Source: Pelomyxa schiedti (taxonomy: Eukaryota > Protista > Evosea). From it: a stretch of 64,000 nt of DNA. A program made the position numbers and the translations under genes. The stretch covers positions 62,001 through 126,000 of the forward strand of contig JAHLWZ010000795.1 in assembly GCA_020536535.1 (NCBI GenBank), in the 5' to 3' direction. Shown here one piece after another: positions 45,033-47,734 of the stretch (positions are counted from its first letter, which is position 1; every line of letters starts with the position of its first letter). The notes beneath the pieces are model-generated. The model did not search any database, was not told the DNA's origin, and saw only the letters and a list, made by a program, of their open reading frames with translations.

Positions 45033-45820
45033 CTATTTGGCGAACGCAATCGCTAACACTGTCATACAATGATAAAAACCCCAAGGTAATGAGGTTACAC
45101 TCACTTGTTTTTCCAACTTTGGCACAGGGGTTCGTGCCCACTTCTCCCGAGACCTCATTGGCTCCTGCAAGCGGTTACAGTTTCGCACACAAAATTTTGC
45201 TTCTACTGGTAAATGCACCCTACTGCCAAATAGACAGCCAAAGTAAAAAAAAAACAAAAAAAAGGCAACTCATCATAATATAGAGTGCAGAGAAACCAAG
45301 TGAAACAAAACATTTCAACACTGGAACAGCCGCACACAACAGCAGCACAAACAGTGGAGCTCTCCTCAGTACCATGTATTTTCTTCACTACCAAATACTT
45401 TGTAATCAACTCACAGAGTCTTCTCCACTCTCCCTCTAACATATGTACAGATTCACCTTTTTTGTAGAAACCATGCCCCACTGAGCACTGCCACATAGAC
45501 AATGACACGTATGATCGAAGTCTTTCGTTTAGATTGCGGTACCAAACCCTCACTCTTGTTTTACAACCCTCACTTTCTCTCTAAGGACTGCCTTGAACAA
45601 CTCTATGTAACACCATAGCGTGACGCACTTACTGGCTGTACAAGTCAGTCATGATCCCACCAATCAGACAAGTCCACTCCAAGAAGCTATCCACCAACAT
45701 AACATTTCTTGCAGTTACAACTACAACTCACACCAGTGGTACAGGCAGAACTTTGGGAAAAAGGGTTTGAAGTACCCCACCCCAAACATCCTCTGGGCCT
45801 AATTCAGAAGACTTAAACAT
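45033..45820 (-). CDS. Hypothetical protein, possible F-box-like N-terminus
   Basis: ATG 45820 reads MFKSSELGPEDVWGGVLQTLFP, with downstream ORFs at 45203-45553 and 45033-45257. I could not splice it cleanly. Confidence 0.3.
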
Positions 45821-45849
45821 TGTTTTGCATTCTTAATTGTTCCTTTCTT

Positions 45850-47489
45850 TCATGAAGAGCTCTTGGCCTTAGCATCTACAAAGAACTGGTCAATGATGGG
45901 AGCATCCACACCATCGTTTTGCATCTTCTGCCTCACCACAGGTTCAGGTAATCCCACCTTGAGCATTGTGGAGTACTTGCCAAGGTTCTTTGCGCCGGCC
46001 GTTGCAACAGCATTTGCCTTGGCAGCAGCCGCGGCCGCTTCTTCCTCGGTCACATTCACGAATGGAATCTTCCCGCCGGGTACAATTCCGTGCCCTGTGG
46101 CTGCCATTTCGAGCCACCAGCTTCCAAACCAGAGTGAGAATGGCCGCCGTACTACATTGAATGTGGGGTTGATGGAGTGCGCAAAGTCGATGCGGTAGTG
46201 CCCCTGCTCATTCTTCTTGGCTATTTTGCCTATGTCACCACCGTACGGGCCCCCAGTGAGCTTGACGTGCTTTCCGATGTGGAGGTCCCAGACGATTTGT
46301 TTGGAGCGAGTGGAACAGGGTTCGCCTTGGGCATTGAATGGTACTCTTATCTGTTCCTCGCCTACAATGCAGTCTGCAGGAAGGTTCGGGGTGTAGAGCG
46401 GAGTGTCCATTGGGCTAACTTGTGAACCCAATCCCAACCTATCCACTAATGCTGTGAGTACATCATCAACTCGGCCGTAGATGCGTAGAGCTGCCCATTC
46501 GTCATAAGGAGTTTGTTGCAGGTTGATAATAACCAAGCCTTGGCACAGGACTGGGTGATGGTATCCCCTTTTGGCAATTGACTTTGGAACGCTATCAGCA
46601 GTGAACCCGGACATGGATGTGCCCAATGCTATACACATATCTGCTTTTTTCTTCCACTCGTTCATCCACGCACATAGGTCAGGGCGCAACTGCCCTTCAT
46701 AGGGTACAATGGGATTTGCTGGATCATGCAGCGAACCATGTATTTCATTGAGTGCATACTGTGGATATCCAGCCTTCTGAGGCAGACTGTCATGGTTCTA
46801 GAAATAAGTAAGACCGAAAGTTGAGGGAAAAAAGGTTATTTATTAATTATTTAATAAGAAGCAAACAATTTCAATACCAAAGGTTTTTCAAACACGGGGA
46901 AGGGAAAGAAAAGAAAAAAAAAAGTTCTAACCTGCTGAACCCAATGCTTTAGGATTCCAGCGCGGAACAAAGCGGCGAGGACCCTGTGTGCCTTCGTGGG
47001 CCTGGCCAGCTTCCAGTCCTTTACCTTGGGCCTCTCAGCGCCGCTCGCGTCGTGCGACATGGCGGACTCGGCGCGGGACTTTGTGGCGTAGTCGTCGATC
47101 CCCGCGGCGGTGCTGATGCCGGCGCCGGTGTACGCGACGAGGGCGGAGGACTTGCGCACCATGCGGACGAGCGCGTCGACCTTGGCGGCCATGACCTCGG
47201 GCTGGTCGGTGTACTCGTGGGCCTTGATGCCCGTGAAGGTGTGCCGCGCGTTCACGTCGTAGTGCATGACGACGCGGGGGGGCGCCCAGCCCGGGTCCCC
47301 GCGGTTGCCGTGCATCCTCTCCCACGTCTCGCCCGTCATCACCTCGCCCTCCTCCGCGGCGGCGCTGCTGCCGCTGGCGGTGGTGGTGCTGGTGGCGGCC
47401 GACGCGGCTACGGAGGCGGCCAGGGCCTCTGCCTCGGGGGTTCCTGGGGGCGGGGGCGGTGCGGGTGCTGTGCCGGTTGTCGTTGACAT
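45850..47489 (-). CDS. Sirtuin (SIR2-family NAD-dependent deacylase) lacking the Zn subdomain, fused to KOW-like and CCDC53-like C-terminal modules
   Basis: Sirtuin motifs YTGAGISTAAGIDDY, PTKAH, VQQ|NHD, EIHG, LGTSM, IINLQQTPYD and IYGRVDDV. One intron at about 46798-46930. Then GKHVKLTGGPYGGDIG and KYSTMLKVGLPEPVVRQKMQNDGVD. Confidence 0.9.
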
Positions 47490-47734
47490 TTTGCTGTAGG
47501 TTATTTTTTTTTTTTCTTGAAACAAACCGAATAACATCGATGTTGTCTTCGTTCGCTAGAGGAAAAGGTGCGGAAAGGCAAAAATGGAAGTTAACGGACC
47601 AAGGGGCGCTCGACTTACAGTCAATCTGATTCCGTAGCTTCACACAGTGTGACGACACTTGTGGGGGAAATTGTCAAGAAGAACAAGACTCCCCGCTGTC
47701 CCAACTTGGGTGTTCCCTTCGTGCGAAAGTAGCG

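Follow-up and report, generated by a model that had tools for sequence, protein, structure and literature searches.

Can a sirtuin that has lost its zinc-binding module still be an enzyme, and to which cellular machinery would its tail direct it? This question is raised by a gene on the minus strand of a 64,000-nucleotide stretch of DNA from the protist Pelomyxa schiedti (assembly GCA_020536535.1, contig JAHLWZ010000795.1, positions 62,001 to 126,000 of the forward strand; the whole stretch is referred to as the window, and its first letter is position 1). The two exons of the gene together encode a protein of 501 residues (P0001), which is annotated at NCBI as 'NAD-dependent protein deacetylase sirtuin-7 [Pelomyxa schiedti]' and in which an earlier reading of the DNA letters (hereafter the original prediction) had recognized a zinc-less sirtuin fused to polyproline, KOW-like and CCDC53-like motifs. 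Based on the comparisons of sequence, profile and modelled fold presented here, we lean towards the view that P0001 is a catalytically competent enzyme consuming nicotinamide adenine dinucleotide (NAD+), from a large branch of the class IV (SIRT6/SIRT7-like) sirtuins that is spread across protists and devoid of the zinc module, and that its tail would be aimed at the actin-assembly machinery.

Loss of the zinc module in a transcribed sirtuin gene

Each exon alone matches human SIRT6 in the PDB at an E value of about 1e-9, with SIRT7 next. For exon 1, whose translation is the start of P0001, the SIRT6 match reaches 1.1e-9 over residues 92-186; the translation of exon 2 is the end of the protein. 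In the HMMER alignment, 'NEIHGS' pairs with 'AELHGN' of SIRT6 (H133), the next block sets 'PIVPYEG' against SIRT6 'TILDWED' (T184-D190), and SIRT6 positions 137-183 have no counterpart in P0001. H206 corresponds to SIRT6 H133 and P215 to SIRT6 T184, with 8 residues between them instead of the 50 found in SIRT6 (42 fewer). 'SLHDPA' alone stands between the HG motif and the 'NPIVPYEG' loop, and no CxxC occurs anywhere in the protein. The stretch of SIRT6 that is skipped holds the four zinc ligands (Cys141, 144, 166 and 177) together with the Arg anchor for the nucleosome acidic patch. The original prediction had deduced the deletion from a spacing of about 14 residues between HG and 'LRPD'. The deletion is real, and tighter than claimed; the landmark was ill chosen, as 'LRPD' is not the canonical LRPxVV and the counterpart of 'RPxVVxFGE' is 'NPIVPYEG'.

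The transcript evidence consists of three single-cell RNA-seq runs from one sample in one study. RNA contigs from the three runs reproduce the splice from 46797 to 46932 exactly, run unbroken over 45812-46797, that is, over all of exon 2, and cover exon 1 over 46932-47217. These contigs establish both the intron and transcription of the gene, and they leave no space for a further exon within exon 2. When the contigs were checked for a missed exon with CxxC pairs, none was present, and a hidden exon carrying the zinc module is ruled out by these contigs together with the identical junction in homologues from intron-free transcriptomes (MMETSP, Trinity).

A family trait of protist sirtuins

A word-index search with exon 2 returned 188 clusters, and the junction 'EIHGSLHDPANPIVPYEG.LR.DL' is found in every one of the 120 listed clusters in which the HG junction was located. 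The named sources are taxonomically scattered: a chrysophyte, the dinoflagellates Polykrikos and Biecheleria, the haptophyte Haptolina, the dictyochophyte Florenciella, the green alga Cymbomonas and a second paralogue from Pelomyxa, to which atlas clusters add members of the Discosea. Many homologues come from transcriptome assemblies, which are free of introns, and have the same junction. A profile for a sister subfamily ('EIHGAWYDPSNPVV') brought in at least 1,664 further clusters, with exactly 3 residues between HG and DPxNPVV in every located junction (120 sequences), and the two subfamilies are split with full support in a quick maximum-likelihood tree. The zinc-less core with its barrel (described below) is thereby found in more than 1,800 protist clusters at 90% identity, and these family members are auto-annotated as generic sirtuins. 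Loss of the zinc module is a family trait and not the mark of a broken gene. The absence of the four-Cys subdomain, a central claim of the original prediction, is borne out by the SIRT6 alignment, the lack of any CxxC, the RNA-confirmed exon 2 and the family-wide junction.

The sister subfamily ('HGAWYDPSNPVV', at least 1,664 clusters) displays a modular organization, with core and barrel fused to an N-terminal YEATS domain, to a ZnF-UBP domain or to a WW domain (P0108-P0110, P0114, P0162, P0170, P0199 and others). This arrangement suggests that swapped reader domains re-aim the catalytic unit.

Catalytic core

By profile and fold scores, on which the class assignment is based, P0001 is a class IV-like canonical sirtuin minus the zinc module and does not belong to the SIR2_2 branch. 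A profile of 84 family members retrieves from the PDB SIRT7 (2e-39) and SIRT6 (3e-38), followed by Sir2Tm (5e-16), SIRT2 (6e-10) and SIRT3 (9e-9); by these values the family stands nearer to SIRT6/SIRT7 than to classes I-III or U. The AlphaFold model, built on the family alignment, has a mean predicted local distance difference test (pLDDT) of 88.8 and a predicted template modelling score (pTM) of 0.84. Its closest folds are SIRT6 chains (Foldseek 6e-19; VIA-align Z 25.7, root-mean-square deviation 2.3 A, 215 residues aligned, 38% identity). The Pfam SIR2 model (PF02146) scores 34.4 bits against a cutoff of 24, with a match restricted to positions 1-106 of the hidden Markov model (HMM) and ending at the HG motif.

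As judged from its sequence, the Rossmann core has retained its catalytic His and the residues that bind the ribose and nicotinamide moieties of NAD, along with a counterpart of the 'VVxFGE' loop of the acyl-lysine channel. In the 84 sequences, G130, I131, Q186, N187, H188, D189, H206, G207, G245, Q280 and T282 are invariant, GAGIST (residues 122-127) is nearly so, and 69 of the 217 core columns are conserved at 90% or more. The invariant or near-invariant motifs are TGAGIS, 'QQNHD.LPQKAG', 'NEIHG', the junction 'D.(x)N', 'G.LR.DL', 'LG(T)S', 'NLQQT' and 'LRI'; H206, N187 and D189 are also conserved in the sister subfamily. Some positions have changed in the family as a whole. The 'GIPDFR' cofactor loop reads 'GIDDYA', with Tyr-Ala for Phe-Arg, so that the Arg is gone; Ala135 is invariant in the family, and 'DYA' is present in all 127 sister-subfamily sequences scored for the cofactor loop. 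QN(I/V)D reads QNHD, which places a His where Ile or Val lines the nicotinamide pocket, and 'VVxFGE' reads 'IVPYEG'; both changes are fixed in the family. The NAD-binding motifs had been described as intact: this stands for GAGIS, QNxD, HG, GTS and NLQ, which are all present, but not for the cofactor loop with its lost Arg, nor for QNHD with its His. Such a pattern of conservation suggests an enzyme selected for catalysis with an altered pocket, and not a decaying copy.

The segment 'QQNHD.LPQKAG' (46744-46797, residues 187-204) stands out in its own right, having 11 invariant positions, which is far above what is seen in canonical sirtuins.

N-terminal extension and KOW-type barrel

The zinc-less core is always accompanied by an N-terminal extension and a KOW-type barrel. 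The extension is conserved in both subfamilies (occupancy 0.98; 8 of 38 columns at 90% or more) and is modelled at a pLDDT of 82-98. The barrel is modelled at 92-98 and has 17 of its 107 columns at 90% or more, with conserved 'RRPFSLW.G.WW' and 'PGG.IPFVNV'. When the barrel is folded alone, its nearest matches outside the family, all weak, come from KOW domains (Spt5/NusG and ribosomal proteins), Tudor and NdhS (Foldseek E of 0.008 or higher, with a probability of up to 0.98; VIA Z 4.4-5.0; template modelling score in the atlas 0.28-0.33). The KOW-like motif noticed in the DNA is present. In P0001 itself the Pfam KOW model scores 15.9-17.5 bits, under its cutoff of 22.3, and the assignment is supported, at weak scores, by the fold, and by matches in 35 of 58 relatives at an E value of 0.01 or less (best 2.4e-6), some of which carry a precomputed PF00467 match. 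With the KOW domains of Spt5/NusG, uL24 and eL27 the barrel shares the G-x-x-V-x-[IL]-x-x-G-P-x-x-G motif and probably the SH3-like architecture. It differs from them by its larger size (about 107 residues), with an extra hairpin and a helix, and the similarity scores are weak throughout. No known case of a KOW protein fused to a sirtuin was found in the literature searches.

In the AlphaFold model the full chain forms a single rigid body (pTM 0.84; pLDDT of the linker 93-98). Because the SIRT6 superpositions extend to model residues 413-422, inside the barrel, the model suggests that the barrel packs on the Rossmann domain.

The proline-rich APAPPPPPG near the N terminus, which the original prediction had listed among the fused motifs, does exist. 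It is not a module, however, and belongs to a lineage-specific tail of low complexity (occupancy 0.28, zero conserved columns, pLDDT 31-65 and only 31-53 at the APAPPPPPG stretch).

The C-terminal CCDC53-type module

The resemblance of the C terminus to the WASH subunit CCDC53 is confirmed by Pfam. The CCDC53 model (PF10152) aligns through its C-terminal third (HMM positions 95-147) with the final 50 or so residues of P0001, scoring 34.5-36.2 bits and thus exceeding the gathering cutoff of 24.6. The N-terminal coiled coil by which WASHC3/CCDC53 assembles into the WASH complex is absent from P0001, which therefore shares a module with CCDC53 and is not its orthologue. The tail is modelled as a three-helix bundle (pLDDT 89-97) whose nearest solved folds are generic three-helix bundles, e.g. 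RecX and homeodomains (Z 5-6.5). A PDB sequence search with the tail gave no match at E values up to 10, a word-index search with the tail on its own recovered nothing beyond the query, and an atlas feature search gave no usable match.

The exhaustive profile search of the library was far more productive, with 2,730 representatives at an E value of 0.001 or less and 1,129 at 1e-10 or less. The best 150 representatives contain 3-12 tandem copies. Among 10 module proteins that were sampled, all match Pfam CCDC53 and 4 are formins with an FH2 domain, some of them with GBD/FH3, PH, ankyrin or WW domains in addition. Using an FH2 model built from the module-search matches, we found FH2 in at least 68 of the best 150 (including P0267, P0274, P0276 and P0279), and the proposed link of the motif to protist formins is thus upheld. 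Modules and FH2 could be placed relative to each other in 62 cases; in every one the modules precede FH2, at a median gap of 25 residues. Stretches of at least five consecutive prolines occur at any point upstream of FH2 in only 2 of 65 module formins. Going by this order along the chain, the module array occupies the position normally held by the profilin-binding FH1 in these formins. The combination of FH2 with CCDC53 is mentioned in no paper of the literature library that was searched.

In many protist formins, 3-9 tandem copies of the module are found directly upstream of FH2. The best match of the tail profile is another protein of Pelomyxa schiedti (P0259, Pelo_14113, KAH3744485.1; 824 residues), in which the module is repeated 12 times in tandem and neither FH2 nor any further Pfam domain is present.

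Within the sirtuins, the tail HMM matches 34 of the 120 closest homologues; among 127 proteins of the sister subfamily it has no match. In the tree, the tail is found mainly in a single large clade that includes the two Pelomyxa paralogues. The tails of the subfamily (n=73) comprise the module in 30 cases, a polyproline run (often with GK repeats) in 23, a Pro-rich sequence in 7, other sequences in 9 and a short end in 4, while the second Pelomyxa paralogue has both the module and a polyproline run. Since polyproline or the module is found in formins and in the sirtuins of this subfamily alike, a common partner in the actin-assembly system would be favoured. P0005, P0006, P0017, P0021 and about 20 others have a polyproline run followed by GKGKGKG repeats, with no module, and a few close homologues end in 'TKW..G..W.KV'.

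Comparison with known systems

Of the known systems, SIRT6 and SIRT7 are the best matches of P0001 by sequence, profile and fold. The core is the same, including the catalytic His, QNxD, GAGIS, GTS and NLQ, and there is likewise no helical bundle in the small domain. In contrast to SIRT6/7, P0001 is devoid of the zinc module (SIRT6 about 137-183), reads DYA for DFR and QNHD for QNVD, and adds the conserved N-terminal extension, the KOW-type barrel and other tails.

Class IV lineages outside SIRT6/7 have been described before. SIR8 and SIR9 are additional class IV families, and about half of SIR8 members have an upstream CAP-C domain, which is actin-related (Gold and Sinclair 2022, PMC9486876). 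SIR8 was described from sponges and cnidarians and has a motif of 9 residues; zinc, KOW and CCDC53 are unmentioned in that article (PMC9486876). SIR8 resembles P0001 as a class IV lineage outside SIRT6/7 with an actin-related fusion in about half of its members, but CAP-C (PF08603) is absent from P0001 at E values up to 0.1.

The class IV sirtuin AcSir2 of Acanthamoeba castellanii is linked to a YEATS domain, and nuclear extracts of its overexpressor showed about 4 times the NAD-dependent deacetylase activity of the vector control (PMC7376869). We considered AcSir2 as a characterized relative and rejected it: it is a canonical class IV sirtuin with both CxxC pairs and a C-terminal YEATS, whereas the zinc-less sister subfamily has an N-terminal YEATS and a C-terminal barrel. 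Chlamydomonas SRT2 (class IV, 320 residues) is too short for core and barrel.

The SIR2_2 or 'sirim' enzymes (ThsA, DSR2, FAM118A/B) also have a sirtuin fold without the zinc-binding module. They belong to another branch of the superfamily, act as NADases or NAD processors through multimerization, and have no acyl-lysine loop. PADLOC models gave no match to P0001 or to P0114 at E values up to 0.01, and a defence-type SIR2 identity was rejected on this ground. Among the sequence and fold matches listed, there is no ThsA- or DSR-type chain; all are canonical sirtuins, led by SIRT6/7.

The original prediction knew of no description of this architecture. We found none in the searchable literature either, be it of a zinc-less protist sirtuin family, of a sirtuin with KOW or of a sirtuin with YEATS. 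Nevertheless, the architecture is not unique to this gene, as shown by the number of clusters with core and barrel and by the CCDC53-type tail in more than a quarter of the closest homologues.

Gene model and feature positions

The features of the gene and of its product are collected in Table 1. The only difference between RNA and genome is at position 46705, where all three RNA contigs have A and the plus strand of the window has T; on the minus strand, GTA becomes GTT, a synonymous change at Val217, which probably reflects variation between strains or alleles. In the NCBI model the protein begins at 47489. An in-frame ATG at 47537, 16 codons upstream, would add MLFGLFQEKKKITYSK to the protein (47490-47537); the RNA contigs end short of this interval.

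Table 1. Features of the Pelomyxa schiedti sirtuin gene and protein P0001 (positions in the window)
Feature	Position	Strand	Residues	Description
Exon 1	46932-47489	minus	186 aa	ATG at 47489; N-tail, N-terminal extension and first half of Rossmann core, to 'VQQ'
Intron	46798-46931	minus		134 nt; GT..AG (GT at 46931, AG at 46798); pyrimidine-rich
Exon 2	45850-46797	minus	187-501 (315 aa)	TGA at 45850-45852; second half of core, KOW-type barrel, helical tail
N-tail	47319-47489	minus	1-57	Ala/Thr/Pro-rich, including APAPPPPPG; predicted disordered, not conserved
N-terminal extension	47205-47318	minus	58-95	Family-specific; MHG..W..P...D..AR....KAHEY.D
Sirtuin Rossmann core, SIRT6/7 type	46420-47204 (including intron)	minus	96-312	Foldseek, VIA-align, family profile, Pfam SIR2
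Zinc-module deletion site HGSLHDPANPIVPYEG	46693-46740	minus	206-221	Catalytic His, then almost directly the counterpart of the 'VVxFGE' loop
KOW-type beta-barrel, predicted SH3-like, with one helix	46048-46368	minus	330-436	Constant partner of the zinc-less core
KOW motif GKHVKLTGGPYGGDIGKIAKKNEQG	46201-46275	minus	361-385	Pfam KOW (PF00467)
Ala-rich linker helix	45991-46047	minus	437-455	Helix 437-456 in the model; not conserved, mean entropy 3.24
CCDC53-C-type three-helix module	45853-45990	minus	456-501	Consensus DLxKYxxMxKxGxPxxAVxQKMxxDGV....I..F

Discussion

In the scheme that we favour, the conserved extension and the barrel would replace the lost small domain, stabilizing the cleft and contributing to substrate recognition; with this role taken over, the enzyme would for that reason still remove an acyl group from a protein side chain or ADP-ribosylate it. 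The last 46 residues would represent one copy of a mobile three-helix module, common to the CCDC53 C terminus and to the arrays that stand at the FH1 site of protist formins. This tail would bring the enzyme to the actin-assembly machinery, by way of profilin, actin monomers or a shared partner, and the substrate would lie there.

Several points weigh against this scheme. Zinc is reported to be needed for the fold and the activity of canonical sirtuins (PMC3484402, PMC12700824), and loss of the module could mean that the deacylase function is altered or lost. With an invariant Ala in place of the loop Arg and with the His of QNHD, the reaction chemistry may not be that of SIRT6. The YEATS, ZnF-UBP and WW domains of the wider family point to varied targets rather than one. 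Finally, the connection to actin (or to endosomes) would be one of guilt by association, through shared modules.

The destination of the tail is where the most serious competing explanation lies. An active zinc-less sirtuin could carry a tail unrelated to actin, serving as a general binder of proteins or nucleic acids, and the enzyme could act, for example, on chromatin, translation or transcription through its KOW barrel. The typical partners of KOW barrels are RNA, ribosomes or polymerases, and SIRT6 and SIRT7 are nuclear. Such a role would also fit the generic character of the three-helix folds nearest to the module, the presence of a YEATS chromatin reader in members of the sister subfamily, and the lack of an FH2 match, with the FH2 HMM used, in at least 82 of the 150 best module proteins. 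We nonetheless find it unlikely, though it deserves serious consideration: the module was identified in two annotated contexts, a WASH subunit and formins, each of them part of the machinery that nucleates actin, the module stands at the FH1 position in the formins, and it alternates with polyproline in the sirtuin subfamily just as it does in formins.

The other explanations concern the chemistry or the gene itself. The zinc tetrad is treated in the literature as the mark of canonical sirtuins, and its absence as that of the NADase-type branch (10.1101/2024.09.18.613514, PMC12700824). Together with the lost Arg of the cofactor loop, this could be taken to mean that P0001 hydrolyses NAD+ or serves in signalling, as do the zinc-less defence sirtuins (ThsA, DSR, SIR2-HerA, FAM118), and that it would destroy or process NAD+ instead of modifying a protein. 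This is improbable in view of the conserved counterpart of the acyl-lysine channel loop (IVPYEG), the lack of any PADLOC match and the lack of a defence SIR2 chain among the matches listed. We give equally little credit to a pseudoenzyme, whose fold would be kept as a scaffold or an NAD sensor with no catalysis. Removal of zinc does inactivate canonical sirtuins (PMC3484402), and the cofactor loop invariably has Ala for Arg. However, in over 200 sequences that span widely separated groups of eukaryotes, the catalytic His, Asn, Asp and Gln and the GAGIS, GTS and NLQ motifs show little or no variation, a pattern that speaks for selection on catalysis. As for an artefact of the gene model, in which a missed exon or a mis-splice conceals the zinc module, the exact RNA splice, the unbroken exon 2 and the shared junction of the MMETSP and Trinity proteins make it scarcely credible, and nothing was found in its favour.

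Whatever the destination of its tail, P0001 belongs to a SIRT6/7-like clade of more than 1,800 clusters in which the zinc module is gone and the catalytic residues are strongly constrained. Such a clade would offer a direct test of the rule that zinc is a hallmark of sirtuins, and it constitutes a natural experiment on the purpose of the small domain. One may go further and speculate that this zinc-free class IV clade is active with extension and barrel standing in for the small domain, that one of its branches is delivered to actin by a module which recruits actin or profilin in replacement of FH1, and that the sirtuin modifies actin or its regulators by deacylation or ADP-ribosylation. So complete a scenario is rather doubtful. 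The module itself links a WASH subunit, formins without polyproline FH1 tracts and a sirtuin through one short helical element. If it is true that this element recruits actin or profilin, it would explain how monomers are fed to FH2 in those formins, and a sirtuin devoted to the actin machinery would be hinted at for the first time.

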